IMG/VR virus record: IMGVR_UViG_3300043418_000072
Location: 248,001 to 312,000 of that record
Length of the DNA: 64,000 bases
Strand: one strand, 5' to 3'
The position numbers and the translations under genes were made by a program. Of the stretch, positions 42,413-54,331 are shown in pieces. Numbering within the stretch: position 1 is the stretch's first letter; each line of letters starts with the position of its first letter. Under the pieces are notes generated by a model, which was given only the letters and a program-made list of their open reading frames with translations, made no database searches and had not been told where the DNA came from.

Positions 42413-43305
42413 CGGGCAACCCCAGTTAACTCTGATACAATAGTTTGTACTGTCTTAATTGAACTAATGTAATCAATTGCTTTGCCCGCAAATACATGCC
42501 CAGCAGTCGGACTCTTGATTCCCAGTTCTAGTCCCATTGTGTGATTACCATCTACGTCAGGCTCTGAAGAAAATACCAAAGCATTTTGATGAGCTTCGCC
42601 AATATTCTTTACTTGATCAAATGACGATTCGATCATTTTCAGTTTGGTTTCAGTTGAAATAGATGATTCTTCTGATACTGCAAATATTGTTCCCAACCCA
42701 ACTGCACATGCTCCTGCATCCAAGCAGTCTTGTATATCTTGTGCCGACGTTACGCCGCCCGATGCGATAATATTTAGATTGCTGTGGGTCGATTTTAGTT
42801 GCTTGATTCTATCCACTAGACTAATTGACACGTCTGCAACACGGGACGCAGCATCTGGTCCCTTTATATCAATTGCATCAATGTAATTAACTAAGTCCCC
42901 AATAGGGCGTGTGCTCAATACTTTGTAGATTATCTTAATTTTATATTTTCTAAAAAGTTTAATGATATTTGTTAAACGAATGTTTGTTAAGTCTACATCA
43001 TCAAACAATTCCAAGTAATTTGGATGGTATTTTAGAATAGCTTCAACCAGCGTTGTATCTTTTAATAAAAAATCCGATCGCAGTGCAAGAATAAAATCAC
43101 GAGACCCAGATTGCTCAGTGAATTCTTTCATCTCCGACACAATCTTTGTTACGTCAAGAGTCAATCGAGACTCAATATAATTGTGTACTACCAGGCTTGG
43201 CAGACAGCCTGCGTTGTGAACCGCGAGAGCCAACTTAACGTCGGACACTCTATTCATTGGCGCACAAATAATAGGATGTGTACAAGATAAAAAATTGTTT
43301 TGCAT
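42409..43305 (-). CDS. Nitronate monooxygenase/FabK-like FMN oxidoreductase
   Basis: PIICAPMNRVS, IIASGGV, GACAVGLGTIFAVSEES. Confidence 0.8.
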   Translation of the reverse strand: MQNNFLSCTHPIICAPMNRVSDVKLALAVHNAGCLPSLVVHNYIESRLTLDVTKIVSEMKEFTEQSGSRDFILALRSDFLLKDTTLVEAILKYHPNYLELFDDVDLTNIRLTNIIKLFRKYKIKIIYKVLSTRPIGDLVNYIDAIDIKGPDAASRVADVSISLVDRIKQLKSTHSNLNIIASGGVTSAQDIQDCLDAGACAVGLGTIFAVSEESSISTETKLKMIESSFDQVKNIGEAHQNALVFSSEPDVDGNHTMGLELGIKSPTAGHVFAGKAIDYISSIKTVQTIVSELTGVAR

Positions 43306-43320
43306 CAGATACTTATCTTA

Positions 43321-43394
43321 TGGTGCTCCCACTAAGAATCGAACTTAGGACTGCGCTATACCACAGCGCCGATATACCATTTACCTATGAGAGC
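43321..43394 (-). tRNA. tRNA-Thr(GGT)
   Basis: Cloverleaf; unusual G32. Confidence 0.85.
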
Positions 43395-43400
43395 AGGTGT

Positions 43401-44609
43401 TTATTTTGTTTGTATAGAGAATACGTCTGTAAACGATTCGCCCCTAATAACATCATACTTCTTTGTATAGTCAAAGAATGCAGATGGCATATTTGGCGTT
43501 AATGTTGATAACGCTTGTTTCACATTTAGTAGCTCAGTAACCAATACTACATAATTTGGTGCAGTTAGTATTTCAACTGCTTTGTTAATTTGCTCAATTG
43601 CCCGGCCCCGCAGTTGATTAGGCAAGTTGTTAAAGTTCATGCCTGGCGGAGAAGTTACGTTATAGCACTTCACGCCAATGGTGTTGTTTTCGTTATATAG
43701 CCGCATCAGGAACGTTGCTGTTTCTGCAAAATCCATTAAACTATATGCAGATATTGCTGTTGTAACTTCCATCTTAAACGGCGATTGAAGTTGGTTAAGT
43801 CTAAGTACGTTACTTTCAACTTTTGGCCAATCTGTTCCGCTGCGAATATATTCTGCCGATTTACCCACTGCGTCAATGCTCATTACCATCTGCACTGTTT
43901 TAAATTTACTAAGACGGTCAACAAACAATGGGTTATACACACTGCAATTGGTGTATAGCTCTAGGTTAATTTCTTTGTTGAATCCGTTATCTATTAGATA
44001 ATCAAGGTAGTCGTAATATTCTTTTATTAAGAATGGTTCCCCACCCGTTAAGCATACTTTCCATACTGAGGCCAAGAAGGCAGGGTCCTTAAGACCCTCA
44101 ATAGAATTGCTTTCAATTTTTGTAATAGGTATCACACTGTACTCAATGTGGCTACCTTCTTTATCTGGTTTAATGTTGTGCTGAATCTTTTCTGCTGCAA
44201 AGCTAGAGCTAGATGTTTCATCGCACATTCTGCATTTCATGTTACACAGATTACTAAATCTAAGTTCAATGCGGCCCGGTACTGTCGGTGTGTCGGCTGT
44301 AAATTTATTTGCAAACCATTGATCTTCGTACTCGGGTTCTGGGCCTACATTATAGTAATTCCAAATTGCGCCGCGTGTGCTTTTTAGCCCCATGTCTTCT
44401 TTTGTCTTGCAGCCGCCACATGCAGTTGGGGCAGTGCCACTCAGCATATCTGTCTTCATCTGCTTGAGCCAATCACTGTTGATATACTCAGCGGGTGTCA
44501 TGCCAGACTCTAAGTTCTTGATGTAATGACACGGACTAGGAGAGTTGGCGTGATAGTACATCATTGTCCACGGTGCTGGGCAAAAGAACTTCTCAGAAAA
44601 CTTTGCCAT
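43401..44609 (-). CDS. Radical SAM enzyme with N-terminal twitch-like domain
   Basis: FCPAPW..PC..CGGC, CNMKCRMC, TGGEP. Confidence 0.9.
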   Translation of the reverse strand: MAKFSEKFFCPAPWTMMYYHANSPSPCHYIKNLESGMTPAEYINSDWLKQMKTDMLSGTAPTACGGCKTKEDMGLKSTRGAIWNYYNVGPEPEYEDQWFANKFTADTPTVPGRIELRFSNLCNMKCRMCDETSSSSFAAEKIQHNIKPDKEGSHIEYSVIPITKIESNSIEGLKDPAFLASVWKVCLTGGEPFLIKEYYDYLDYLIDNGFNKEINLELYTNCSVYNPLFVDRLSKFKTVQMVMSIDAVGKSAEYIRSGTDWPKVESNVLRLNQLQSPFKMEVTTAISAYSLMDFAETATFLMRLYNENNTIGVKCYNVTSPPGMNFNNLPNQLRGRAIEQINKAVEILTAPNYVVLVTELLNVKQALSTLTPNMPSAFFDYTKKYDVIRGESFTDVFSIQTK

Positions 44610-44625
44610 TATGGCTCCTGTATTA

Positions 44626-44701
44626 TGGTGCCTCTAACCGGATTCGAACCAGTGACACAAGGATTTTCAATCCTCTGCTCTACCAACTGAGCTATAAAGG
44701 C
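44626..44701 (-). tRNA. tRNA-Phe(GAA)
   Basis: Canonical cloverleaf. Confidence 0.9.
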
Positions 44702-44801
44702 AAATTTAAATGGCATTGTGGGTTCCTACCACACCTGAACCTTGTTCCACCGCTCGTTCAAAGACTTATGTGGCGATCCCGTGCATTCGCATTACACCAT
44801 A

Positions 44802-44920
44802 CCATATAGAAGCACTCTCAAATGCAGGCATAGGAGGAGTCAAGCTCTGAAACTTTCGCATCTGCAGATACTAGGCTTCTTCTCCCGCTTTGACTTATGC
44901 CAAGAATACTTCTATATAGG
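44802..44920 (-). ncRNA. Stem-closed small RNA
   Basis: ~15-bp terminal duplex ATATAGAAG.A.TCT; inner GGCATA/TATGCC helix. Confidence 0.4.
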
Positions 44921-45142
44921 CTCCACCGTTAACGACAGCATTCGTCCTGGCTTTATTTTATGTCGGTTAATGCACGGTGGACACACATGCCGACGGGGTT
45001 ACAGTTTCAATGATGGGATTCGAACCCACTAACTACCCGTGCGCTGCGGGTTGTGCTACGCTCAATATAAAACTGGTTTACTCTGTTTCGAACCAGACCA
45101 ACAGTATATCTTTGCACTATCTTTCCATGTCGTCTTCATTGT

Positions 45143-45245
45143 TACCATATAGAAACACACTATGTGGAATCGAACCACTGACCCTTTCACTCCGTAGAGA
45201 CCGTGCAATACGCTTAGTCGCCGACTAGTATGTTTTTATATGGTA
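45143..45245 (-). ncRNA. T-arm-containing RNA on long stem
   Basis: 20-bp imperfect terminal inverted repeat; GTGG-TTCGATT-CCAC. Confidence 0.5.
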
Positions 45246-45318
45246 GAAGCACTGGGGCTCGAACCCAGGACCCTCGGATTAAAAGTCCGATGCTCTAAAC
45301 CAACTGAGCTATACTTCC
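45241..45318 (-). tRNA. tRNA-Lys(TTT)
   Basis: Canonical cloverleaf. Confidence 0.9.
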
Positions 45319-45325
45319 ATGACCT

Positions 45326-45456
45326 TACCATATCAAAGTACGCTACGGAATCGAACCGCAGTCGTCAACCTTTCCCTCCAGGGCAATTGATACAATTATA
45401 GCTTCCACAGGAGCGACCTGATTCACTATAATGCACTAGCGTACTTTGATATGGTA
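45326..45456 (-). ncRNA. T-arm-containing RNA on perfect 20-bp stem
   Basis: TACCATATCAAAGTACGCTA perfect inverted repeat; CGG-TTCGATT-CCG. Confidence 0.5.
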
Positions 45457-45526
45457 GGGGCACAGAGAATCGAACTCTGGTTCTCTGGTTAAAAGCCAGA
45501 TACTTTAGCCGCTAAGTTATACCCCC
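45452..45526 (-). tRNA. tRNA-Lys(TTT), second copy
   Basis: Cloverleaf with CCA. Confidence 0.9.
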
Positions 45527-45529
45527 ATA

Positions 45530-45604
45530 TGGTCCACAGCCAGAGAATCGAACTCTGTTAGCCCGGGTAAGAGCCGGGTACTTCGCCAGCAAAGTTTGCT
45601 GTGG
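45530..45604 (-). tRNA. tRNA-Lys(CTT), atypical
   Basis: A8 instead of U8; loop CT-CTT-AC; CCA. Confidence 0.75.
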
Positions 45605-45617
45605 ATGGATTCGTAAA

Positions 45618-45692
45618 TTACTTTTCTTTTACGTGCCATCCAGGACCATACGGGGGTCTAGGATGACACTATCGTTTACCTGAACGTTTCAT
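45618..45692 (-). promoter_or_regulatory. Mini-ORF MKRSGKR-UAG followed by a strong hairpin
   Basis: AAGGA RBS, ATG 45692, TAG 45669-45671, hairpin 45633-45669, in-frame TAA at 45618. Confidence 0.45.
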
Positions 45693-45706
45693 GACATTTT
45701 TCCTTT

Positions 45707-46378
45707 TTAATTCCAAAGTAAGTCAAAGTTGCCAGCTAACACTTTCTTAACGCTTGCAGTCTTGTCACTTACGTGATCTTTAACTGTATCGTCTTGAAAG
45801 CGGTATGTGCGAATTTTGTCTCCTCGCATCCCTGAACCAACTTGTTGCTTTCTGTTGCTTGCTAAGTTGTTATTATAACAGTCTTTTGTTATCTTGTCAA
45901 CTCTTTCTCTAATAGTTTGCATGGCTTCTGCCAAACTATTTTCCCTACTGCGGCACTGTGCTGTTACTACTGTGCCGCTAGGTACGTGCGTAACACGGGC
46001 ACTGTTTTGGTGCTTGTTACGGTGTTGTCCTCCTGCGCCTGTTCCGCTGTACCATTCAATCTTCAGATCTGAGTCAAGAATAGCAGTGGTCGGCACACTT
46101 GGATCAACGACAGCGACAGTAACGGTACTAGTATGTACTCGTCCTTTTCGCTCAGTTGGTGGTACACGCTGTATTCGGTGTCCACCTGGCTCGTTGTATA
46201 AGCCAGATAAATCAGCACCCTCGACTAAGATATGAACTTCGCCAAGATACTCATTTATCAGGCGGCTAGTTCAGCCCTTGCTGTGTGCAAATTTAATGTA
46301 GGCTTGCGCCAAGTCTTTTACAAATAGTTTACTGTCTTCGCCACCTTCTGCGGCACGGACTTCAATTACACGTTTCAT
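45707..46378 (-). CDS. RF1-like peptide chain release factor lacking domain 1, with in-frame UGA at codon 36
   Basis: EVRAAEGG, KG*T, GGHRIQRVPPTERKGRVHTS (PxT), GAGGQH, KIRTY; the frame is continuous across TGA 46271-46273. Confidence 0.85.
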
Positions 46379-46703
46379 ATTCATTTTTCTCTTTTAATCG
46401 CATAGCTTCTAATCTTGCTTTCAAGAATAGTTCAACTACATCTTTATTTAACTTAGTAAATCCTGTCTTGATTAGAAAGAACAATTCGTCTTTTTCTGAC
46501 TCAAGCCATACCACGTGAGCATCACCTGTATTGCCCACTGCCCCAAGTCCTTCGGGGTTGCTGAATCTCTGTGCCGCGTTACAAATGAACGCAAACTTTA
46601 CCCCAAAGTCCCTTGATAGTACTTCTGGACCAGTGGCCTCACCTTGGGCAATCCGGTACACATAGTTGTACTCGTACGGAACGTCAACGTAGACTTTGTG
46701 CAT
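46362..46703 (-). CDS. Hypothetical protein
   Basis: 113-aa coupled ORF. Confidence 0.55.
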   Translation of the reverse strand: MHKVYVDVPYEYNYVYRIAQGEATGPEVLSRDFGVKFAFICNAAQRFSNPEGLGAVGNTGDAHVVWLESEKDELFFLIKTGFTKLNKDVVELFLKARLEAMRLKEKNEYETCN

Positions 46704-47206
46704 TAGATATCACCTTCGTGGCTTGGGGGTAAAATGATACCACCTGCGCTGTATTGGTATGGTTGACCATTGATTGTTGGCTCTTCGTTCTCATCGTATG
46801 TCCATCCCAGATGCTTCATCATGCGATGCTTGACTAGCAAGTTAGGAGCACGAAATGCTTCAGTGTCATCAAACCCAAGCATGACCCCAACTTCACAAAC
46901 TGCACCACTGCGGCAAACACCGGCATGGCAGTGAACAATCACGTTCATGCGATTCTCTAGTGCATGTTGCAACAAACGAACTAGCTCCGCAGCTTGCTCG
47001 TGACTGCAACGCATTTCTTCTTCAAGAACGTAGTCCTTTTCCTCTACATCGAGGAACTCAAATTGATGAACTTCTCTAAACTTGTAAAGGGGGGTAGGAC
47101 ACTCGCTCCCGCAGTCAACAATTTGAATCAACATAGCGTTATCACCGGGGTTTATGTGAAACCCTTTAGTGACATCGCTACGTGCTACGTTTTGGATCCA
47201 GGGCAT
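46703..47206 (-). CDS. Cys-based tyrosine/dual-specificity phosphatase
   Basis: VHCHAGVCRS (CX5R); start MPWIQN. Confidence 0.85.
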   Translation of the reverse strand: MPWIQNVARSDVTKGFHINPGDNAMLIQIVDCGSECPTPLYKFREVHQFEFLDVEEKDYVLEEEMRCSHEQAAELVRLLQHALENRMNVIVHCHAGVCRSGAVCEVGVMLGFDDTEAFRAPNLLVKHRMMKHLGWTYDENEEPTINGQPYQYSAGGIILPPSHEGDI

Positions 47207-47231
47207 TTTGTTTCCTTGTGTTAAATACAGT

Positions 47232-47408
47232 ATGAGCAAACCCAATCCTGGATTCGATGAATTACTTAAACTCGGCAACGGAACTTATTCCAATGCTAAG
47301 AGCTTCTCTTGTGTTAAACATTTTACACGAGATTATCCTGAAAAGCAAGATTTGCCTTTTGTACAGGATATGAAATTCTGGCAGAGGATAGTGGAATCGA
47401 ACCACTAA
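47232..47408 (+). CDS. Possible small late protein (58 aa)
   Basis: TAAATA just upstream of the ATG; overlaps the tRNA remnant. Confidence 0.25.
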   Translation: MSKPNPGFDELLKLGNGTYSNAKSFSCVKHFTRDYPEKQDLPFVQDMKFWQRIVESNH

Positions 47409-47412
47409 TGAC
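47379..47412 (-). pseudogene. 3' half of a tRNA (Gln-like remnant)
   Basis: T arm, acceptor 3' strand and CCA only, abutting the intact tRNA-Gln. Confidence 0.6.
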
Positions 47413-47490
47413 TGGCAGGGGTTATCGGATTCGAACCGATGATACTAATTTCAAAGACTAGTGCTTTAGGCCAAACTAAGCTAAACCCCA
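47413..47490 (-). tRNA. tRNA-Gln(TTG)
   Basis: Loop CT-TTG-AA, G73, CCA. Confidence 0.85.
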
Positions 47491-47494
47491 ACAA

Positions 47495-47896
47495 TTATCT
47501 ATATTTTTCCAAGTTGTTTAATGTCCATCTACCGACATTTTTACCTTTATTTCTACCAGCAAATGTATCTGTTTGACTATGGCAGTTAGGACATAATAAT
47601 CTTAGATTATCTAGTTTATTATTACTTGAGTCACCGTTTATGTGGTCCACTTGACACTTAATTGGACGACTGGCCCATTCGGATATTCCGCAAGTGGAAC
47701 ACTTGTTACCAAATAAACTCATTAACACACTGTATATTGTTGGCCGATTTGTTATTTGCCCATCAACAATAAGTTTTTTATTTTCTGCTAATACCATACT
47801 AGATTTATGCTGACTCTGGCATGCGTGATTACAATAAACTCTCTCTTGTGTTGAATATCTTGGTATGATTTCTTTTTTACAATTTAAGCATAACAT
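47495..47896 (-). CDS. HNH endonuclease
   Basis: CSTCG...QVDHING..NN...NLRLLCPNCHS; preceded by TATAAATA at 47917-47924. Confidence 0.9.
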   Translation of the reverse strand: MLCLNCKKEIIPRYSTQERVYCNHACQSQHKSSMVLAENKKLIVDGQITNRPTIYSVLMSLFGNKCSTCGISEWASRPIKCQVDHINGDSSNNKLDNLRLLCPNCHSQTDTFAGRNKGKNVGRWTLNNLEKYR

Positions 47897-47958
47897 AGTG
47901 TTATTCTCCTTAATTGTATTTATAACGTTGGCTTGATTGTGCCAACGTTATACCAAAT

Positions 47959-48021
47959 TGGTGGACAACCGTTTAACGTCCGATCGCCCAAAGACGGGGT
48001 CTGTGTGCTAACAATTTATCC
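47959..48021 (-). ncRNA. Degenerate 63-nt tRNA-like element
   Basis: GGATAA/TTGTCC-A-CCA acceptor with shrunken arms. Confidence 0.3.
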
Positions 48022-48051
48022 TATTATACGCCGCTAGCAAAGGCGAGGCTC

Positions 48052-48126
48052 TGGGGAGAAGTACGGGAATCGAACCCGTGATAGCGGAATCACAACCCGC
48101 GGTTTTGCCACTAAACTAACGACTCC
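48052..48126 (-). tRNA. tRNA-His(GTG)
   Basis: G-1:C73, CCA. Confidence 0.85.
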
Positions 48127-48133
48127 ATAACTC

Positions 48134-48343
48134 TTAGTCGCGCAACTTTTTCAAGTACTCGCGGCCAATTTTTCCTTCTTCAATTTCTTTCAACACTGTT
48201 GCAGTGATGCCACCAGCGCCACTTACTTTTGCAGCATGTCCTCGCTTGAGTTCACGTGCTCGTGCGCTTGCAATAAGCACTAGATCAAAACGATTACCAA
48301 CTTGGTCTACTGCTGCTGCTGAAGTGTTTCTACTATTTGACAT
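48134..48343 (-). CDS. rpoZ: RNA polymerase omega subunit homolog
   Basis: VGNRFDLVLIASARAREL..G...LKEIEEGKIG. Confidence 0.85.
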   Translation of the reverse strand: MSNSRNTSAAAVDQVGNRFDLVLIASARARELKRGHAAKVSGAGGITATVLKEIEEGKIGREYLKKLRD

Positions 48344-48353
48344 AACTACCCTT

Positions 48354-48782
48354 TTAAAAATCTTCCGTAACTTGCTTTAAGCCTTCAATTTGGTCAAGCT
48401 CAAAGTCTTCAATGTGCTTAACTGATCCGCCATAGTAGCCATTGTGGCTGTTACGCACTTCAATGTCAATGTAGCCGCGGTCGGTTTTGATAGTCCAGAA
48501 CCCGTCTTGAACTACTTCGTATCCGTCTTCTTCGCGATTATCGCCCCAGCCTTTGTCTTCTGTTTCAGTCACCAATGCGCCACGCAATAGATCAAAGCTG
48601 TTACCTTCACCTAGGATAGTAGCACCATTGATGTGATTGAACCACACGCTGTTGCAACAATCGTTCTGTGTATCAAAACGAAAATACTTGCCGCTAACTG
48701 TACGGAATACCAATGCCCAGCTGTCGTTGCCTAGAAAGATTCCGTTAATGCGCTCACCGCGCAATACTTTGAATGCTGACAT
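48354..48782 (-). CDS. Hypothetical phage protein
   Basis: DCCNSVW...TDRG...HNGYYGG; start moved out of the tRNA to MSAFKV. Confidence 0.7.
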   Translation of the reverse strand: MSAFKVLRGERINGIFLGNDSWALVFRTVSGKYFRFDTQNDCCNSVWFNHINGATILGEGNSFDLLRGALVTETEDKGWGDNREEDGYEVVQDGFWTIKTDRGYIDIEVRNSHNGYYGGSVKHIEDFELDQIEGLKQVTEDF

Positions 48783-48800
48783 TGTATTTCCTTTGTTGAT

Positions 48801-48875
48801 TGGTGCGTCTGGATGGAATCGAACCACCATTCCTAAGTTCGTAGCCTAGTGTACTTTCCATTGTACTACAGACGC
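48801..48875 (-). tRNA. tRNA-Arg(ACG)
   Basis: Cloverleaf with CCA. Confidence 0.85.
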
Positions 48876-48879
48876 AAAT

Positions 48880-48956
<77 letters not shown>

Positions 48957-49067
48957 AATATGCTTTACAACACTGTGGGCTGTCCACTCAAGTCCGTGTC
49001 AGACATATAGCAGTACACTAAATCTCGTCTACTATACATTCCAGTTTACTGCTGGTTCAGTTAAAAT

Positions 49068-49143
49068 TGGTGGAGAATATCGGACTCGAACCGATCACCT
49101 ACAGCTTGCAAAGCTGCCGCTCTCCCAGATGAGCTAATTCCCC
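49068..49143 (-). tRNA. tRNA-Ala(TGC)
   Basis: G3-U70, canonical. Confidence 0.9.
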
Positions 49144-49147
49144 AATT

Positions 49148-49221
49148 TGGATGCGGGTGCAAGATTTGAACTTGCGATGCTCCGAGCTTATGAGACTGGA
49201 GTGGTGGCCGCCCTACCCGCT
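49148..49221 (-). tRNA. Atypical tRNA-Met(CAT)-like
   Basis: 1:72 mismatch, reduced D arm, bulged anticodon stem, CCA. Confidence 0.6.
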
Positions 49222-49228
49222 ATAACCT

Positions 49229-49302
49229 TGGTGCCCCATAACAGAATCGAACTGCTATCCCCGGATTACAAAACCGGTGTTCTACCATTTAACTAATGGG
49301 GC
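49229..49302 (-). tRNA. tRNA-Thr(TGT)
   Basis: Cloverleaf with CCA. Confidence 0.9.
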
Positions 49303-49308
49303 GAAATT

Positions 49309-49384
49309 TGGCTGGCAAACCTGGGCTCGAACCAGGGACATCTTGATTAACAGTCAAGCGCTCTACCGACTGAGCTATATGCCA
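49309..49384 (-). tRNA. tRNA-Asn(GTT)
   Basis: Canonical. Confidence 0.9.
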
Positions 49385-49392
49385 ATAACACT

Positions 49393-49421
49393 ATTATATA
49401 TGACACGCACATGCTTGTCAA
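49393..49421 (-). promoter_or_regulatory. Consensus sigma70 promoter within the tRNA array
   Basis: TTGACA-17-TATAAT. Confidence 0.75.
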
Positions 49422-49428
49422 TAAATTT

Positions 49429-49503
49429 TGGTACCCGATGCAAGATTTGAACTTGCGACCAACGGCTTATCAAGCCGCTGCTCTACCACTGAGCTAACCG
49501 GGT
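49429..49503 (-). tRNA. tRNA-Ile(GAT)
   Basis: Cloverleaf with CCA. Confidence 0.9.
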
Positions 49504-49511
49504 AAATTAAA

Positions 49512-49716
49512 TTTGTAAGTAGTTGAGCCGCTGTTATCTCAACGCTTCACCCGAATTAACTAGTCCGGACGGGGGCAGTCTGCCACTAGGAATACTTGTC
49601 CAGTACAGCCTCCAAATGGCCCGCGCACGGTGGGATTCGAACCCATTAACCTTTTACTAAACAACACCTTCGAAGAATATTGAATAGCGTGACGTTCTCT
49701 TGCTGACACTTACAAA
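49512..49716 (-). ncRNA. ~205-nt stem-closed RNA with internal T arm
   Basis: TTTGTAAGT/ACTTACAAA closing stem; central TGGG-TTCGAAT-CCCA. Confidence 0.5.
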
Positions 49717-49718
49717 AC

Positions 49719-49794
49719 TGGCGCCGTGGACGGGAATCGAACCCGCCTAGGTCTCATCGACAGTGAGGTGCCCTACCCAGAGAGCTACCACGGC
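49719..49794 (-). tRNA. tRNA-Asp(GTC), G37 variant
   Basis: Loop CT-GTC-GA. Confidence 0.85.
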
Positions 49795-49801
49795 ATTAAC
49801 T

Positions 49802-49876
49802 TGGAGCGGGTAGTCGGTATCGAGCCGACTACTCAAGTTTGGAAGACTAGTGTGTATCCGTAAACACCTTACCCGC
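49802..49876 (-). tRNA. tRNA-Gly(TCC), divergent
   Basis: T-loop CTCGATA, CCA. Confidence 0.8.
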
Positions 49877-49883
49877 TAAAACT

Positions 49884-49970
49884 TGGAGGATAGAAACAGA
49901 ATCGAACTGTTACCGCTTTCGCAGTAGATCGGTTTAGCAAACCAACTCGGCACCATGCACACTACTATCC
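49884..49970 (-). tRNA. tRNA-Ser(GCT), divergent (U73)
   Basis: Long variable arm, CCA. Confidence 0.7.
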
Positions 49971-49975
49971 ATAAC

Positions 49976-50051
49976 TGGCATCCTGTACGGGAATCGAACC
50001 CGTCTCTACAACTTGAAAGGCTGTTGATCTAAACCGATAATCTAACAGGAT
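49976..50051 (-). tRNA. tRNA-Glu(TTC)
   Basis: Loop CT-TTC-AA. Confidence 0.85.
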
Positions 50052-50058
50052 ATAAAAC

Positions 50059-50135
50059 TGGCGCCTCGTATCGGGCTCGAACCGACGGCCTCAACAGTGA
50101 CAGTGTTGCGCTCTAACCAACTGAGCTAACGAAGC
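50059..50135 (-). tRNA. tRNA-Asp(GTC)
   Basis: Canonical. Confidence 0.9.
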
Positions 50136-50142
50136 ATAAATT

Positions 50143-50460
50143 TCGAGGAGCATCATTCTTGAGGACTCTTACCCCACCCTTTTGCTCACGCTGTTGTTCA
50201 CTGCGATTGCCACCATGCTCCCTCGCTGGCGGGTGTTTACTTTGTGGCTCTTGCTTTCCACTTGATTCTGTTAGTTCAAGGAATACACGGCGTTAAACTA
50301 ACCCACAAACTAGATGTGGTGATTAACTTCTGTCCTTGTTGCAGTCTTTCCGCTAACAATACTTTTCCTTACCCTACTGGACCGACTTTGCTTATCGTTC
50401 GTCACTTTCGTGAAGCCCGGGAAGTCTCTCCCGGGTCGGTTTCCGTCTACTCTAGTACTC
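50143..50460 (-). ncRNA. Block of unidentified structured RNA(s)
   Basis: CCCGGGA/TCCCGGG, TCAC-GAAA-GTGA, CCGAC/GTCGG and GAGCAT/ATGCTC helices; no credible ORF. Confidence 0.4.
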
Positions 50461-50478
50461 ACTATTGTCTTAGTGTTT

Positions 50479-50564
50479 TGGTGGGGATAGTTAGATTCGA
50501 ACCAACTCATCCAGTGGAAACAGATTTACAGTCTGCCGCGCCTCTCCAACTGCGCCGTATCCCC
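50479..50564 (-). tRNA. tRNA-Tyr(GTA)
   Basis: Long variable arm, CCA. Confidence 0.9.
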
Positions 50565-50576
50565 ATTATTTCTTTA

Positions 50577-50756
50577 TGCTGTTAAGGCTGATATCTAATA
50601 AACCCTACTAGGAATCGAACCTAGGCCCCCGACGGATTATGCCGGTGTGCGTCCACTACACTATAGAGACTCCCTCCTCTTTCGCTCGGCAAAGCTACAC
50701 GAATTGAGGTTAGATTTCAGACTGCTTTCAGATTGCCGTCATCAGCCTTAACAACA
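50577..50756 (-). ncRNA. tRNA-like domain on long closing stem (Y-RNA-like architecture)
   Basis: ~16-bp terminal duplex TGTTAAGGCTGAT; D arm, CTAGG-TTCGATT-CCTAG; no CCA. Confidence 0.55.
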
Positions 50757-50762
50757 CAAACT

Positions 50763-50832
50763 TGGCGCCCCTAACAGGAATCGAACCTGTCTACGTTCGG
50801 CTTCAAATCCGACTCGCAACTCAGTCCGGGGC
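50763..50832 (-). tRNA. D-armless tRNA-like RNA with 8-nt anticodon loop
   Basis: GCCCC/GGGGC-G-CCA, T arm, TCGG-ATTTGAAG-CCGA. Confidence 0.55.
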
Positions 50833-50842
50833 ATAAACTTAT

Positions 50843-50987
50843 GTACATCAGCGGGATTCGAACCCGCACACATCACCCGAACATACCGCATTGTTAGCGG
50901 CTTACACATCCTAGGCCACTGGCCTTTACTGTCGATGTCCTACTTAGTGTTATGGGTAATGCTCTCCCAATTGATAGTATGACGCAC
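50843..50987 (-). ncRNA. tRNA-like RNA with ~75-nt anticodon-arm insertion
   Basis: 8-bp acceptor, D arm, CATTACCC/GGGTGATG stem, T arm; no CCA. Confidence 0.55.
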
Positions 50988-51061
50988 GAAATAGAAACAC
51001 ATTGCTAGTTTCGCCTTGAGCCGACTTTAAAATCAGATGCGGTTTAAGCAATGTGAAAACT

Positions 51062-51201
51062 TGGTGTAGTAATTGGGACTTGAACCCAACTAGTTATCTG
51101 TTTTTACAAACGGGTGATATCACTTCCCATCGCCATATGCCCCTCGGGTTTGCAATCCTGCTACGCACACAGTCAAATAACCTGTCAACCTAACTTACCA
51201 C
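51062..51201 (-). ncRNA. 140-nt tmRNA-like RNA (Ala-identity tRNA-like domain)
   Basis: GTGGTAA/TTACTAC-A-CCA with G3-U70, stemless D loop ending GAC, 9-bp P2-like helix, T arm. Confidence 0.5.
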
Positions 51202-51208
51202 AAAAACT

Positions 51209-51283
51209 TGGAAGAGCTACGGGGAATCGAACCCCGCTTGCCTGGATGAAAACCAGATGTCCTAACCGATAGACGATAGCTCC
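51209..51283 (-). tRNA. tRNA-Glu(TTC), divergent
   Basis: Loop TT-TTC-AT, U73. Confidence 0.8.
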
Positions 51284-51284
51284 A

Positions 51285-51367
51285 CTATATGTAAACACAA
51301 TACTCATCCGCTTTACGCTAATATCACTTTAGGCGATTTGATTGTTCGGCATTGTGTTTGCATATAG
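51285..51367 (-). ncRNA. Stem-closed small RNA
   Basis: Terminal duplex matches 33348-33434. Confidence 0.45.
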
Positions 51368-51404
51368 AGCCCTGTAACTTGTACAGGGATATATGACAGT
51401 ATCT

Positions 51405-51414
51405 TTTTAAAGAC
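51405..51414 (-). promoter_or_regulatory. boxA-like element followed by a CCTGTA hairpin
   Basis: GTCTTTAAAA downstream of tandem promoters. Confidence 0.4.
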
Positions 51415-51467
51415 TGTTAGCATTACAGTACGATCACTGCGCTGCGTTGTTTGTTTAACATGTATGT

Positions 51468-51496
51468 ATTATAGTACCAATTTCTTTATTGGACAA
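51468..51496 (-). promoter_or_regulatory. sigma70-type promoter
   Basis: TTGTCC-17-TATAAT. Confidence 0.6.
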
Positions 51497-51562
51497 CTGT
51501 TATTTTCTAACTGTTGTTTTTATGCTACTCTACACTTTATGCTAATTTCTTAACATGTGTGT

Positions 51563-51591
51563 ATTATAGCACCCATTTCATTAAGTGTCAA
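51563..51591 (-). promoter_or_regulatory. Consensus sigma70 promoter
   Basis: TTGACA-17-TATAAT; spacer start CTTAATGAAA shared with the 34878 promoter. Confidence 0.8.
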
Positions 51592-51594
51592 ATT

Positions 51595-51671
51595 TGGTAC
51601 CCCTGGCTGGATTCGAACCTGCAACCAAAAGATTTTAAGTCTGTCCGCACTACCAATTAGCGTACAGGGGC
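51595..51671 (-). tRNA. tRNA-Leu(TAA), short variable loop
   Basis: 77 nt, loop CT-TAA-AA, A73. Confidence 0.8.
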
Positions 51672-51674
51672 ATA

Positions 51675-51751
51675 TGGTACCTTCGGGCGGATTCGAACCC
51701 CCAACCAACAGTTTCTAAAACTATCCGCACTACCAATTAGCGTACGAAGGC
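51675..51751 (-). tRNA. tRNA-Leu(TAG), short variable loop
   Basis: 77 nt, loop TT-TAG-AA. Confidence 0.8.
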
Positions 51752-51759
51752 ATTGTATG

Positions 51760-52016
51760 TGGCTTCGTTAGCAGGACTCGAACCTGCGACCCGGGGCTTA
51801 AATCGCGTATGCTGGGTGCCCCGTGAGTTTCCAAAAGTTACCCTCACATCCCCTCAATGCCTTATCTCACTTTTCACACATTTCAACCTGTCCCGCACTT
51901 CCCGGGCTCACAGTGTTTGGTTTTAAAGCCTACGCGATTGTTATCTACTTTGTGCTACTAGATGTATTATCTCATCTACTCAATGCTGCTCTACCTTCTC
52001 TCTACTCTATAACGAA
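51760..52016 (-). ncRNA. 257-nt tRNA-like RNA with large internal domain
   Basis: TTCGTTA/TAACGAA-G-CCA, T arm, internal AATCGCGTA/TACGCGATT helix. Confidence 0.55.
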
Positions 52017-52023
52017 ATAAACT

Positions 52024-52100
52024 TGGTACCCCGTGTCTGATTCGAACAGACAGCCAACTCCTTTTGAGAGAATCCGCACTACCAATTAGCGTAACGGGGC
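52024..52100 (-). tRNA. tRNA-Leu(CAA), short variable loop
   Basis: 77 nt, loop CT-CAA-AA. Confidence 0.8.
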
Positions 52101-52110
52101 ATTTAAATTT

Positions 52111-52186
52111 TGGTGCAACCTCCAGGGATCGAACCTGGTTCAATGGCTCTTCAGACCACCGCTATGACCACATCAGCTAAAGTTGC
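52111..52186 (-). tRNA. tRNA-Phe(GAA), G37 variant
   Basis: Loop CT-GAA-GA. Confidence 0.85.
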
Positions 52187-52189
52187 ATT

Positions 52190-52264
52190 TGGTAGTTCCT
52201 AGTGGTGTCGAACCACCGACCTCTACAATGTCAATGTAGCGTTCTACCGCTGAACTAAGGAACT
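52190..52264 (-). tRNA. tRNA-Val(GAC)
   Basis: Cloverleaf with CCA. Confidence 0.9.
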
Positions 52265-52271
52265 ATAAAAC

Positions 52272-52345
52272 TGGCACGGGAACCGGGGCTCGAACCCGGA
52301 ACGACAGAGTCAAAGTCTGTTGTGTTACCATTACACCATCCCCGA
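52272..52345 (-). tRNA. tRNA-Gln(TTG)
   Basis: Loop CT-TTG-AC. Confidence 0.9.
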
Positions 52346-52353
52346 ACAAAAAT

Positions 52354-52432
52354 TGGACACTGTGGTGTAAGTTGCAGTACACATTACTAACTATTTGCAA
52401 GGCTACACATAGCGGCCCCGCTTAACACAGTG
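52354..52432 (-). tRNA. Highly atypical tRNA-like RNA, possibly Cys (GCA + U73)
   Basis: Perfect 7-bp acceptor CACTGTG/CACAGTG-U-CCA, non-canonical T loop, TTGCAAA in the central loop. Confidence 0.45.
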
Positions 52433-52440
52433 ATAAAAAT

Positions 52441-52612
52441 TGGAGTCTAGTGCTGTTGTGACACAGCAACATCCCTTGAGCGAGAGCGTAGGAACTAAAT
52501 CTACGGGTTTAACACCTCTTGGGTTGAACAGTCAGGACAATTACTTTGTAAGCGTACTAAACAGCGCCTGTTCAGAGCGCTCCCTTTGGGTTACTTTCAT
52601 TTCCAACTAGAC
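52441..52612 (-). ncRNA. 172-nt tRNA-like RNA (acceptor + CCA, large interior)
   Basis: GTCTAGT/ACTAGAC-U-CCA and a GCTGT/ACAGC arm in the T-arm position. Confidence 0.5.
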
Positions 52613-52617
52613 ATAAT

Positions 52618-52696
52618 TGGCTCCGAGTGTGGGAATCGAACCCACCTAACCACTGATTAACAGTCAGGTCCCTGCACCTTGCTTGGATTTCTCGGA
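52618..52696 (-). tRNA. tRNA-Asn(GTT), divergent
   Basis: Altered D arm, CCA. Confidence 0.8.
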
Positions 52697-52702
52697 ATAA
52701 CT

Positions 52703-52778
52703 TGGTGCCCCAGTCCGGAATCGAACCGACTTCTCCTGCTTACAAGACAGGACCTCATCCATTAAAGGTTTCAAGGGC
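52703..52778 (-). tRNA. tRNA-Thr(TGT), divergent
   Basis: Loop CT-TGT-AA, CCA. Confidence 0.8.
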
Positions 52779-52783
52779 ATATA

Positions 52784-52860
52784 TGGCATACCAGGAGAGA
52801 TTCGAACTCCCATCACGCAATTTTGGAGACTGCTGTTCTGCCAATTGGAACTACTGGTAT
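52784..52860 (-). tRNA. tRNA-Trp(CCA) with U11-A24
   Basis: D stem GTTC/GAAC; loop CT-CCA-AA. Confidence 0.9.
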
Positions 52861-52867
52861 ATAAACT

Positions 52868-52951
52868 TGGTGGATACTGTAGGAATCGAACCTACTCACT
52901 TTACGAACTGGGTTACAGCCAGCCACACCTCTCCAACTGTGTCGAGTATCC
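52868..52951 (-). tRNA. tRNA-Tyr(GTA)
   Basis: Loop CT-GTA-AC, long variable arm. Confidence 0.85.
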
Positions 52952-52959
52952 ATTAACTT

Positions 52960-53033
52960 TGGTACCTGGTACAAGAATCGAACTTGTGATAAAGGCTTAT
53001 CAAGCCTCCGTTATACCATTTAACTAACCAGGT
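52960..53033 (-). tRNA. tRNA-Ile(GAT)
   Basis: Cloverleaf with CCA. Confidence 0.9.
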
Positions 53034-53039
53034 AAAATT

Positions 53040-53128
53040 TGGCGGGGAGATAGTAGAATCGAACTCTAACCACTTTCGCAGTCCATCGGTTTTCAAGACC
53101 GTGACAGGCCCAGCCTGCATAACTCCCC
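53040..53128 (-). tRNA. tRNA-Ser(TGA), divergent
   Basis: Long variable arm, G73, bulged T stem. Confidence 0.75.
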
Positions 53129-53133
53129 GTGAT

Positions 53134-53207
53134 TGGTCTGGGTAGCTGGAATCGAACCAGCGCCTCGAGTATCCAAGACTCGTCGACTACCATTATCCTA
53201 TACCCAG
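53134..53207 (-). tRNA. tRNA-Pro(TGG), A37 variant
   Basis: Loop CT-TGG-AT. Confidence 0.85.
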
Positions 53208-53214
53208 ATTATTT

Positions 53215-53289
53215 TGGTGGAGGCCGGGGGTATCGAACCCCTCTAGACAATCTACGTGCAAGGCAGATCCGCAGCCCTCTGCTGCCCCC
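53215..53289 (-). tRNA. tRNA-Ala(TGC), atypical D arm
   Basis: G3-U70; D arm GCAG-AGGG-CTGC. Confidence 0.7.
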
Positions 53290-53296
53290 ATAAAAG

Positions 53297-53446
53297 GTTT
53301 TTGAGAGCCCAACTATCCTCCTGGGAGGACTCACTGGATTGTCTCGTATGGACGAGTTTATCAACCACTATAGCAGCCTGGCGTTATCATGTAGTAGACA
53401 CTACACTATGCTATGTGGGACTCAAGTCCTACGTCTATCTCAAAAC
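53297..53446 (-). ncRNA. Stem-closed structured RNA
   Basis: TTTTGAGA/TCTCAAAA closure with several internal hairpins. Confidence 0.35.
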
Positions 53447-53447
53447 T

Positions 53448-53522
53448 TGGTGGATGTAGCTAGATTCGAACTAGCGATAGTTACCGTATGAAGGTAGTGC
53501 ATTACCACTTTGCTATACATCC
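53448..53522 (-). tRNA. tRNA-Met(CAT), elongator-like
   Basis: Loop TT-CAT-AC, CCA. Confidence 0.8.
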
Positions 53523-53844
53523 AAATATATTCCTTAAGGTTTCCGGCGCTGGGCTCGGACATAGTATAGAATCAGAATCTATCTATCATCGTCATCCTTA
53601 AGGTATTCATAAACAAACTAGTGGGTCGCTGCCAAAAAATATGTTTCAAATATATTCTAGTCTTCTAGTTTGTTTGTGAATACCCTGTATTGCTACAGGA
53701 TATGTTAGGGTCGATACCCTAACCAGTTATTTGTACTCTGCTGTTACCGCCAGCATTTCATCCAACTGTCCGCCCGTTTAAAGATTATTATAGTGTTCTT
53801 TCAGGTCCTCGTTACCTGGGCATATAGCACTTATCTAACACTGT

Positions 53845-53997
53845 CTATGCGTGAAGTGAAAACTTTTTACGGCTTTCTAGTTCCTTCCTTGCACGTTCTA
53901 ACTTTTCTTGAATCAACGTATTACGTTGTTCTGTTGTTAGCGTATGCTCGGCAGTAAACTTTACTTCACGAATTCTTTTATTAAAGTCTACCTTCAA
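53845..53997 (-). CDS. Small basic protein (50 aa)
   Basis: AAGGA RBS, TTG start just after the terminator: MKVDFNKRIREVKF... Confidence 0.4.
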   Translation of the reverse strand: MKVDFNKRIREVKFTAEHTLTTEQRNTLIQEKLERARKELESRKKFSLHA

Positions 53998-54010
53998 AAA
54001 TTTCTTCCTT

Positions 54011-54045
54011 AAAACAAAAAACCCTAGGGTTTTTAATCCTAGGGT
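54011..54045 (-). terminator. Intrinsic terminator of putative attenuator
   Basis: ACCCTAGG/CCTAGGGT followed by TTTTTGTTTT. Confidence 0.75.
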
Positions 54046-54071
54046 CCTTTAAGTTTGTTAGCTACTACTTG

Positions 54072-54221: not shown

Positions 54222-54227
54222 GTTAGT

Positions 54228-54256
54228 ATTGTATGTTTATTTACCTTTGTTGTCAA
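54228..54256 (-). promoter_or_regulatory. sigma70 promoter for the leader/tRNA operon
   Basis: TTGACA-17-TACAAT. Confidence 0.75.
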
Positions 54257-54331
54257 CCTCTTTAACAACATCTGGTAAATTTATTTATCTTTTTGTTTAA
54301 ACTTTCGTTTCTTTGTTTGTTACAAGCCTCA

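Follow-up and report, generated by a model that had tools for sequence, protein, structure and literature searches.

An RNA polymerase omega subunit homologue with a remodelled N-terminal tip, encoded in the tRNA gene array of an uncultured freshwater phage

An uncultured freshwater phage with a complete genome of 354 kb carries, inside its tRNA gene array, a homologue of omega (RpoZ), the smallest subunit of bacterial RNA polymerase (RNAP). The end of the protein that normally helps to bind the starvation signal ppGpp has been rebuilt, beginning with MSNSRNTS, whereas all 86 cellular beta- and gammaproteobacterial omegas compared begin with MAR(V/I)(T/S). Such remodelling has occurred at least three times independently in a large phage-only clade of omegas, for which no description was found in the literature. 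The initial annotation described a clear omega core with this altered N-terminus inside the tRNA array, and that observation is confirmed. Its proposal that the phage omega could blunt stringent control of tRNA transcription, an effect which it called uncertain because Arg and Thr are retained, is only partly supported, as a link to ppGpp is plausible but has not been demonstrated.

Identity and genomic setting of the phage omega gene

The analysed window, a stretch of 64,000 nucleotides, corresponds to bases 248001-312000 of a 354,098-bp IMG/VR virus record (IMGVR_UViG_3300043418_000072), rated 100% complete by CheckV. The omega gene is an ORF of 69 amino acids, starting at the first ATG after an in-frame stop and ending in TAA, with no alternative start codon upstream in the open frame. 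Its product passes the curated thresholds of both omega families, scoring 41.3 bits against Pfam PF01192 (RNA_pol_Rpb6; cut-off 26) and 30 bits against TIGR00690 (rpoZ; cut-off 23.6), while a phmmer comparison with solved E. coli and Vibrio omega chains gave E = 4e-8. The AF2 model (mean pLDDT 79.1) contains four helices, and its top 50 PDB matches are all omega chains taken from RNAP structures, the best of them with TM 0.72-0.75 normalised to the query and a probability of 1.00. Residues G16, N17, R18, D20, L21, R28, R30, E31, L32, G35, T49, E53, E55 and G57, which belong to the conserved omega core (GNRFDLV...RAR and T..L.EIE.G), are invariant in the alignment examined and shared with E. 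coli omega.

The gene is maintained by purifying selection. dN/dS is 0.07-0.10 against relatives, with synonymous sites saturated, and the three variants seen inside the gene in other samples are all synonymous. Unlike cellular rpoZ, it does not lie in a gmk-rpoZ-spoT or equivalent chromosomal operon but among phage tRNA genes (Table 1), with tRNA-Arg located 0.46 kb upstream. No beta or beta' gene (PF00623, PF00562) and no sigma70_r2 match was found in the genome, which has 13 perfect sigma-70 consensus promoters, so the phage very probably uses host RNAP.

Table 1. Features of the omega locus, in window coordinates.
Position	Strand	Feature	Supporting observations
48134..48343	-	rpoZ-like CDS: 69-aa omega subunit homologue (N-terminal class A)	Family scores, structure comparison and dN/dS given in the text
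48320..48343	-	Codons 1-8, MSNSRNTS: remodelled N-terminal tip	Aligns to E. coli M1-V6, the part that contacts ppGpp at site 1, with a two-residue extension
48344..48353	-	10-nt spacer AAGGGTAGTT between the stop codon of the upstream ORF and the omega ATG	Holds a Shine-Dalgarno-like AAGGG, read directly from the sequence
48354..48782	-	Upstream ORF, DUF7448 / phrog_2650, function unknown	Probable start is the internal Met, because the longer frame overlaps tRNA-Arg; a 143-aa DUF7448 gene also sits directly upstream of omega in the relative L127
48052..48125	-	tRNA-His(gtg), starting 8 nt after the omega stop codon	Would imply co-transcription and release of the omega mRNA 3' end by tRNA processing; same omega-to-tRNA-His junction in the relatives L127 and L128
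48801..49384	-	Six tRNA genes (Asn, Thr, Met, Ala, Pro, Arg) between the nearest promoter and the DUF7448-omega pair	No terminator-like site found on the - strand between 49393 and 48134
49393..49421	-	Perfect sigma-70 consensus promoter TTGACA-N17-TATAAT, 9 nt before tRNA-Asn; likely promoter of the tRNA-DUF7448-omega-tRNA transcript	One of 13 perfect matches in the genome, all on the - (coding) strand, against about 0.02 expected per strand
32156..54664	-	tRNA array: 48 tRNA genes, all on the - strand, interspersed with small ORFs	

The phage omega clade and its N-terminal tip

The gene belongs to a large family of phage omegas. Searches returned 695 matching protein clusters, of which all six contexts examined are phage-like, and at least 455 IMG/VR stretches encoding a relative. 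The phage omegas form one clade (support 90/95) on a long branch (0.61-0.66 changes per column) apart from cellular omegas, although the three-group tree is unrooted and cannot say whether beta- or gammaproteobacterial omegas are the sister group. In 64 of 74 viral loci, tRNAs lie on the same strand, usually 4-30 nt from the ORF.

In the HMMER alignment, R5, N6 and T7 of the phage protein correspond to R3, V4 and T5 of E. coli omega. The difference is therefore a two-residue extension (Ser-Asn), with Ser in place of Ala2 and Asn in place of Val/Ile4, while Arg and Thr are kept. Within the phage clade the canonical MARITS tip is ancestral and is retained by class B, which makes up 33 of the 120 representatives compared. 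On a tree built without the tip columns, the altered classes A (to which this protein belongs), C and D are each one clade nested among canonical-tip phage omegas. The tip is extended in classes A and C, whereas class D has lost the Arg altogether, replacing it with Asn and adding acidic residues; overall, the family provides tips that are canonical, extended by 2 or 4-5 residues, or lacking the Arg. Each new tip is conserved within its class. In class A it is as conserved as the protein core, with S4, R5, N6 and S8 at 100% among 47 representatives.

Class B omegas (e.g. P0069 and P0074, from related uncultured jumbo phages) are 63-68% identical to the present protein and share its tRNA-array location and neighbouring gene types, including the DSPc phosphatase, but they begin with MAR(I/L)TS like cellular omega. 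Many of them are followed, 2-4 kb downstream on a class B range of 2-7 kb, by a small Rel/SpoT-type hydrolase gene (8 of 17 loci). In a profile scan of 10-kb flanks, such an alarmone-hydrolase-like gene occurred 2-7 kb downstream of omega only in classes B, C and D (16 of 50 loci with enough flank), and in 0 of 10 class A loci. The present genome nevertheless encodes an HD_4 domain of the Rel/SpoT/Mesh1 type, located 187 kb from omega in a 784-aa protein of unknown function (G000:C1:107755-110109, - strand, in the phage genome record). This domain scores 56.5 bits over residues 366-504, contains the HD and ED motifs HP..V and LHDTVEDT, and matches Mesh1 and Rel structures at E = 1e-15, its activity on (p)ppGpp being inferred from sequence alone. 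The possibility that omega and the small hydrolase were captured together from a host rpoZ-spoT operon fits gene order and strand, but PDB-level similarity of the hydrolase does not discriminate SpoT from other Rel and Mesh1 types.

A possible role at ppGpp site 1 and alternative readings

The tip is the part of omega that contacts the 5'-diphosphate of ppGpp at site 1, through Ala2 and Arg3 (PMC13192712) or residues 2-5 (PMC7676912). In E. coli, omega lacking residues 2-5 abolishes specific ppGpp binding at this site, with Kd above 100 uM, normal affinity in that assay being about 6 uM (PMC7676912). The repeated rebuilding of the tip in phages, its conservation within the class and the alarmone-hydrolase-type domains and genes of these phages strengthen the lead beyond what the initial annotation could see. 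In the favoured but tentative reading, the ORF encodes a functional omega of a jumbo phage that transcribes its genes with the host sigma-70 RNAP. The gene would be transcribed early from a consensus promoter as part of a tRNA-mRNA polycistron, with the message released by tRNA processing. The protein would then bind host beta' at the normal omega site, filling omega-free enzyme, entering newly assembled enzyme, or exchanging with host omega. RNAP carrying it would probably respond differently to (p)ppGpp at site 1, most likely more weakly, and the expected result would be continued transcription in starved or stringent host cells, mainly at the elongation and pausing step, alongside the action of the SpoT-like hydrolase domain. 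The identity of the gene, its predicted fold, purifying selection, the phage-specific clade, the embedding among tRNAs, the derived and conserved tip and the lack of detectable phage beta/beta' rest directly on the data. In contrast, binding to host beta', which is considered likely, and a changed ppGpp response, which is possible but no better than evenly balanced, are inferred. A complex prediction of the phage omega with two pieces of E. coli beta' (residues 330-680 and 1230-1407) and ppGpp scored 0.27 against a mark of 0.34, which is not evidence either way.

Several points weaken the link to ppGpp. The retention of Arg and Thr means that site 1 may still form, and the extension could even add contacts. 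The occurrence of the site-1 residues (E. coli R362, R417, K615, I619, D622) in the host beta' is assumed only from the proteobacterial type of this omega. Because class B keeps the canonical tip, tip alteration is not why phages carry omega in the first place. Moreover, loss of omega or site 1 gives only a modest phenotype in E. coli, where initiation control runs mainly through DksA and site 2 while site 1 acts mainly on elongation (PMC7676912, PMC13192712); omega is not needed there for stringent control of stable RNA in vivo, and an rpoZ deletion is mild (PMC7676912). Additionally, the phage tRNA promoters, being perfect TTGACA-N17-TATAAT with AT-rich discriminators, are not of the type repressed by ppGpp and already look insensitive to stringent control.

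A simpler reading, possible though somewhat less favoured, is that the phage merely supplies omega, which helps beta' to fold and assemble, stabilises core enzyme, keeps RNAP saturated with omega and so favours the primary sigma factor, to the benefit of a phage that depends on strong sigma-70 promoters in slow-growing freshwater hosts. The altered tip would then be a lineage-specific feature with little or no effect on ppGpp. The canonical tip of class B, the retained Arg and Thr of class A and the reliance on sigma-70 promoters without a detectable phage RNAP agree with this view, as do the established chaperone role of omega (PMC5811629) and the fact that a fraction of cellular RNAP lacks omega (17-25% of particles in PMC13192712, with the same point made in PMC7676912). 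However, a tip that never varies among the 86 cellular sequences compared, but was changed at least three times in phages and then held fixed, suggests a function rather than drift, and the loss of Arg in class D and the recurrence of alarmone-hydrolase-like genes in the same gene island also speak against it. It is unlikely that the protein is an omega mimic which binds a phage protein or a host stringent-response factor, or which binds beta' as a poison or marker redirecting host RNAP. The long branch and the location in an island of host-takeover-type genes (a phosphatase, a release-factor-like gene, an HNH nuclease and RNA repair genes) would allow this, but the defining core, including the T49, E53 and G57 region, is conserved under strong purifying selection, the model superposes on omega chains from RNAP structures, and no partner candidate is conserved next to the gene across classes.

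Contamination, mis-assembly or a recently captured, decaying passenger is refuted by the available evidence. All eight tblastn hits in the GenBank phage collection are indeed bacterial DNA filed as phage, one with the bacterial gmk-rpoZ-spoT context, and two relatives sit in bacterial MAG bins. However, the present gene lies in the middle of a complete virus record between phage tRNAs, independent samples hold the same arrangement at 95-100% identity, and it recurs in contigs of 200-380 kb. The two MAGs each have their own, different omega, so the small contigs are mis-binned, and the low dN/dS does not fit a decaying gene.

A more far-reaching reading, regarded as unlikely on present evidence, is that subunit swapping is a phage strategy, in which a large clade of freshwater jumbo phages replaces host omega and, in at least three lineages, has independently re-engineered the tip so that host RNAP no longer senses (p)ppGpp at site 1. 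This would complement phage alarmone hydrolases and phage tRNAs, allowing transcription and translation to continue in starved cells. The only established regulatory role of omega is to form site 1, whose function in vivo has been hard to pin down because an rpoZ deletion also affects enzyme assembly. Omegas with an intact core and naturally varied tips would offer a ready-made allelic series for asking whether the tip sets ppGpp affinity and whether escape from site 1 helps a virus in nutrient-poor water.

Comparison with known systems and further observations

Compared with E. coli and gammaproteobacterial omega (e.g. PDB 4JK1 chain J, 6PSS chain K), the phage protein has the same predicted fold and 39-42% overall identity. 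Its N-terminal half (residues 9-34, including VGNRFDLVLIA..RAR) is 65% identical on average to gammaproteobacterial omegas, although that set was picked by motifs from this half, so the higher value is partly selection bias. It has 69 rather than 87-96 residues, lacks the acidic, Gln-rich C-terminal tail, and its linker is one residue shorter. The initial annotation had also taken the C-terminus as a hint of a Burkholderiales host, but this hint is weak. The short form (66-69 aa), the 15-residue linker (in 12 of 23 Burkholderiales sequences) and the C-terminal motif GKIG.E.LKK, corresponding to G(K/Q)(I/V)G.E.L(K/R)(K/R)V in Burkholderiales omegas such as that of a Polynucleobacter MAG (L088), are shared, the C-terminal part being up to 57% identical. 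The N-terminal half, however, is only 41% identical (DCLK.IPNRFEL.LAA.YRARQ in Burkholderiales), the Burkholderiales tip is canonical MARIT, and overall identity is about 39-51% to both groups, the nearest cellular omegas being 44-51% (GTDB Enterobacterales families) and 31-47% (Burkholderiales) identical. Neither did other evidence identify the host, as the phage TctC protein is only 31-36% identical to Burkholderiales paralogues, and phage contigs occur in two conflicting bins, of Polynucleobacter and Lentimicrobiaceae.

Phages are known to retarget host RNAP with sigma factors, inhibitors and covalent modification, but a virus that encodes a homologue of a core subunit of the host enzyme is unusual. 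Phage sigma-like factors, T7 Gp2, Xanthomonas phage P7 and Thermus phage gp39 also act on the host enzyme as small phage proteins, but they are unrelated folds, or sigma homologues that bind as accessory factors, whereas the present protein is a true homologue of a core subunit. The HD-alarmone phosphodiesterases of jumbo phages (PMC7824862) and the T7 portal protein Gp8, which inhibits RelA and SpoT (bioRxiv 10.64898/2026.01.27.700999), share the proposed aim of keeping phage gene expression going when the host raises (p)ppGpp. Those systems remove or prevent the signal, while the step proposed here would replace the receptor subunit of the signal on RNAP, for which no description in any phage was found. 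In the papers that could be searched, none combined omega or rpoZ with jumbo, huge or mega phages, and two comparative papers on jumbo and huge phages do not mention it. None of the 50,697 GenBank phage records holds a genuine phage omega, no PHROG family matched, and the nearest isolated phages by helicase (Phosso, Atu_ph07 and PA5oct) gave no omega hit, although hundreds of metagenomic viral contigs carry the gene.

Evidence on expression is suggestive only. The metatranscriptome runs were examined as contigs, in which presence in RNA libraries cannot prove transcription; one run covers the region evenly, which could reflect DNA carry-over, and two runs cover it in patches with peaks on tRNAs. 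The locus illustrates a protein gene embedded in, and probably matured from, a tRNA polycistron, and the mis-binned relatives are a reminder that omega on a small contig can mislead MAG binning and marker-gene counts.

A phage-encoded omega homologue and its genomic setting

The omega gene is a 69-aa ORF with the sequence MSNSRNTSAAAVDQVGNRFDLVLIASARARELKRGHAAKVSGAGGITATVLKEIEEGKIGREYLKKLRD, which begins at the first start codon after an in-frame stop and ends in TAA. It is separated from the stop codon of the upstream ORF, DUF7448 / phrog_2650, of unknown function, by a 10-nt spacer, AAGGGTAGTT, with a Shine-Dalgarno-like AAGGG, while tRNA-His(gtg) begins 8 nt after its own stop codon. The ORF scores 41.3 bits against Pfam RNA_pol_Rpb6 (cut-off 26) and 30 bits against TIGR00690 rpoZ (cut-off 23.6), and it matches E. 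coli and Vibrio omega chains of solved RNAP structures at E = 4e-8. An AlphaFold2 model built on a 13-sequence alignment has mean pLDDT 79 and four helices, although residues 1-4 are below pLDDT 50. The top 50 PDB matches of the model are all omega chains, the best with TM 0.72-0.75, and they include omega of the E. coli holoenzyme-ppGpp crystal structure 4JK1. Thus, the observation made in the initial annotation, namely an omega core with a non-canonical N-terminus located inside a tRNA array, is confirmed in every respect.

The region (bases 248001-312000) belongs to a 354,098-bp IMG/VR virus record that CheckV rates 100% complete. Helicase and virion-protein similarity place the phage as a distant relative of the Atu_ph07, Phosso, PA5oct and Rak2-like jumbo myophages, at 48-51% and 24-29% identity. 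Searches of the genome returned no match to RNAP beta' (PF00623), beta (PF00562), sigma-70 region 2 or the DksA zinc finger. By contrast, the genome has 13 perfect TTGACA-N17-TATAAT promoters, all on the coding (-) strand and none on the other, where about 0.02 per strand would be expected by chance; three further sites differ only by having TACAAT. The phage therefore very probably uses host sigma-70 holoenzyme, which is an inference from promoter content. Five perfect and two near-perfect promoters lie inside the tRNA array, and several of the perfect ones lie directly in front of tRNA genes; the discriminators of these promoters are AT-rich. The nearest promoter upstream of omega is placed 9 nt before tRNA-Asn, and no terminator-like site follows it before omega. 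The predicted transcript runs from this promoter through tRNA-Asn, Thr, Met, Ala, Pro and Arg, then DUF7448, omega, tRNA-His and onward.

The tRNA genes of the array, all on one strand, are interspersed with small ORFs. A free-standing HNH endonuclease gene lies between tRNA-His and tRNA-Gln; in the relatives L127 and L128 other genes occupy this position, which suggests a mobile insertion. A dual-specificity (Cys-based) phosphatase-like protein recurs within a few kb of omega in all tip classes examined. Two radical SAM proteins, which may be RNA-modifying enzymes, are also encoded there, and relatives have radical SAM genes in the array as well. Another gene of the array is release-factor-like, with an RF-1 domain, a GGQ motif and an RF1-type P-x-T motif (RVPPTE), and it is one reading frame interrupted by a single in-frame TGA. 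The stop falls where release factors have a conserved Trp after Gly (..HSKG*TSRLI..), and the same in-frame TGA is present in L127, whose omega is 91% identical. None of the 48 tRNAs has a UCA anticodon, but the phage has two tRNA-Trp(cca). This could be programmed UGA readthrough, without any claim of another genetic code.

Freshwater metatranscriptome assemblies from two studies hold the stretch around omega. Since these data are contigs only, they cannot prove transcription; in two of the runs, however, coverage is patchy with peaks on tRNA-Gln and tRNA-Arg, as expected for RNA rather than DNA carry-over.

Coordinates of the omega gene and of the other features discussed (G000:C1, the whole virus record; L002, L003, L124 and L125, stretches from related phages)
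Feature	Sequence	Position	Strand
Omega ORF	window	48343-48134	-
tRNA array (48 tRNA genes)	window	32156-54664	-
Nearest perfect promoter upstream of omega	window	49421-49393	-
Perfect sigma-70 promoters (first base of the -35 hexamer)	window	54702, 54499, 51591, 49421, 45900, 35080, 34906, 17458	-
HNH endonuclease	window	47495-47896	-
Dual-specificity phosphatase-like protein	window	46703-47278	-
Release-factor-like gene	window	45707-46384	-
In-frame TGA of the release-factor-like gene	window	46271-46273	-
Release-factor-like gene of the relative	L127	8429-9100	
Radical SAM proteins	window	43401-44609; 35031-36206	-
784-aa ORF with HD_4 domain (outside the window)	G000:C1 (L007:7755-10109)	107755-110109	-
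Small alarmone-hydrolase-like genes	L002	6797-7333	omega's strand
	L003	6427-6963	omega's strand
	L124	8870-9406	omega's strand
	L125	6322-6864	omega's strand
TctC-family (Bug) proteins (outside the window)	G000:C1	208698-209447; 124279-124968	
Stretch found in metatranscriptome runs X1, X4 and X5	window	46100-48900	

The phage omega family and its N-terminal tip

A word-indexed protein search found 695 clusters at E below 0.001, of which the best 120 are 60-99% identical. Six different clusters, from four tip classes, were examined, and every genomic context was phage-like, with contigs of 20-380 kb, tRNA arrays, small unknown ORFs, DNA polymerase B and RNA-repair genes. None had the bacterial gmk-rpoZ-spoT arrangement. 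IMG/VR contains 455 stretches that encode a relative. Of the 74 loci that could be parsed, 64 have tRNAs in the flanks, every one of those tRNAs is on omega's strand, and the nearest is usually 4-30 nt from the ORF. The exceptions are one class A sub-lineage in which omega sits next to DNA polymerase B, and one short class C contig (L173).

The GenBank phage collection has no genuine case, and PHROGs has no family for the protein. All eight tblastn hits in that collection are bacterial DNA filed as phage, one being a contig with pilin genes, ispH and gmk-rpoZ-spoT. The records that are bacterial DNA or carry bacterial (enterobacterial-type) omega (hits H21-H28) include Acinetobacter phage MD-2021a, Campylobacter phages A11a and A18a, and short Escherichia and Salmonella "phage" records. 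The nearest truly cellular omegas are 44-51% identical in Alteromonas, Aeromonadaceae and Succinivibrionaceae, and 31-47% identical in 120 Burkholderiales genomes. Two hits at 58-59% identity in bacterial MAGs are small mis-binned phage contigs, L008 (CALKUJ010000329.1) and L009 (CAZEDO010000145.1), placed in a Polynucleobacter MAG and a Lentimicrobiaceae MAG. Both MAGs also have their own, different omega, so that each is given two omega genes.

On maximum-likelihood trees, which rest on 59-69 columns, the phage omegas form one clade, with SH-aLRT 96 on a quick tree and support of 90/95 on a careful tree built without the tip columns. The gene is under strong purifying selection, as dN/dS is 0.07-0.10 within class A with synonymous sites near saturation. 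The three variants seen inside the gene in two other freshwater samples are all synonymous.

HMMER aligns phage R5, N6 and T7 to E. coli R3, V4 and T5; in other words, where cellular omega has M-A-R-V/I-T, the phage protein has M-S-N-S-R-N-T. In all 63 gammaproteobacterial and 23 Burkholderiales omegas extracted, the first five residues are MAR(V/I)(T/S). The phage family, however, shows several tip classes.

N-terminal tip classes of the phage omegas
Class	Tip	Change from the canonical tip
A (the omega described here)	MSNSRNTS, with variants MSRNSS and MPNNNRNTS	Two-residue extension, Val/Ile changed to Asn
B	MAR(I/L/V)TS	None (canonical)
C	M(S/T)ESR(A/V)RYTS	Extension of four to five residues before A/V-R-Y-T
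D	MLKVIKVPFSPQNIDTDKC	Arg replaced by Asn, acidic residues introduced

On the careful tree, class A is one clade (support 99/97), class C is one clade (93/85) and class D is one clade (100/100), while class B is scattered around them. With the cellular omegas all canonical, the simplest reading is that the canonical tip is ancestral in the phage family and was then remodelled at least three times, a count that depends on rooting the phage clade with canonical cellular sequences. Within class A the new tip is as conserved as the core: S4, R5, N6 and S8 are identical in all 47 representatives, whereas residues 9, 10 and 13 vary freely.

Omega is one of the best-known small proteins, and the automatic annotation of JGI already labels many of these viral proteins as omega. 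A literature search found no paper that describes a phage-encoded omega, its tRNA-array location or its tip variants, and one comparative paper on jumbo phages notes HD-alarmone phosphodiesterases but not omega (PMC7824862). 

Possible role of the remodelled tip in the response to ppGpp

In E. coli RNAP, site 1 for ppGpp lies between beta' and omega, and most contacts to the 5'-diphosphate come from omega Ala2 and Arg3 and from beta' Arg417 (PMC13192712). The phosphates are also described as coordinated by omega residues 2-5 and by beta' R417 and K615, and RNAP carrying omega that lacks residues 2-5 has lost specific binding, with Kd above 100 uM (PMC7676912). Both ppGpp sites are generally conserved in proteobacteria (PMC7676912). 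Nevertheless, a rpoZ deletion gives only a modest lag after a nutrient downshift, while a dksA deletion is much more severe. Initiation control runs mainly through DksA and site 2, whereas site 1 acts mainly on elongation and pausing (PMC13192712, PMC7676912).

What the analysis establishes is an apparently functional, selected, phage-specific omega with a derived and conserved tip, co-located with tRNAs and predicted to be co-transcribed with them from a consensus sigma-70 promoter. Its binding and activity, by contrast, are inferred from sequence and structure prediction. That it occupies the omega site on host beta' can be inferred with good confidence, because the whole core that defines omega is conserved and the phage has no detectable polymerase of its own for it to serve; a complex prediction decided nothing either way. 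That the remodelled tip changes the response to (p)ppGpp at site 1 is a more tentative inference, about as likely as not at best.

This latter reading rests on several points. The tip is the only part of omega with a known regulatory role, and it is invariant in the cellular omegas compared but was repeatedly rebuilt in phages and then held fixed, with class D removing the Arg. Additionally, the same phages invest in alarmone hydrolase-type domains. The present genome has a central Rel/SpoT/Mesh1-type HD_4 domain with intact HD and ED motifs (residues 366-504, motifs HP..V and LHDTVEDT) inside a 784-aa ORF, whose large N- and C-terminal parts match no Pfam family. Related phages of classes B, C and D carry a 178-180-aa Rel/SpoT/Mesh1-like small alarmone-hydrolase-like gene 2-7 kb downstream of omega on the same strand, in 16 of 50 IMG/VR loci with enough flank, and AAA_33 kinase, phosphatase and T4-type RNA ligase genes lie nearby. 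The order of omega followed by hydrolase echoes the bacterial rpoZ-spoT operon. On the other hand, class B keeps the canonical tip, so carrying omega has a more basic benefit. Class A keeps Arg and Thr, class A loci lack the adjacent hydrolase (0 of 10), and the reading is made without knowledge of the host.

The interpretation offered in the initial annotation is thus supported only in part, and its specific idea, relief of stringent repression of tRNA promoters, is the weakest element. The phage tRNA promoters are perfect consensus sequences with AT-rich discriminators, and from established promoter biology these are not the short-lived, GC-discriminator complexes that ppGpp and DksA inhibit. 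Any effect is more likely on elongation and pausing across the long tRNA-mRNA transcripts and the rest of the genome.

Indications of the host

The host is probably a freshwater beta- or gammaproteobacterium, and the evidence does not narrow it further. The initial annotation had taken a Burkholderiales-like C-terminus as a hint, and the phage omega indeed shares the short length (66-73 aa), the linker length and the C-terminal motif GKIG.E.LKK with Burkholderiales omegas, the C-terminal part being 42% identical on average and 57% at most. However, its N-terminal half is closer to gammaproteobacterial omegas (65% against 41%), although that comparison is biased, because the gammaproteobacterial set was selected by N-half motifs. 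The habitat is freshwater and GC content is about 43-44%, while one relative was binned with a Polynucleobacter MAG and another with a Bacteroidota MAG. The phage also encodes two TctC-family (Bug) periplasmic solute-binding proteins, which are only 31-36% identical to Burkholderiales paralogues, and relatives also carry DctP and ClpS.
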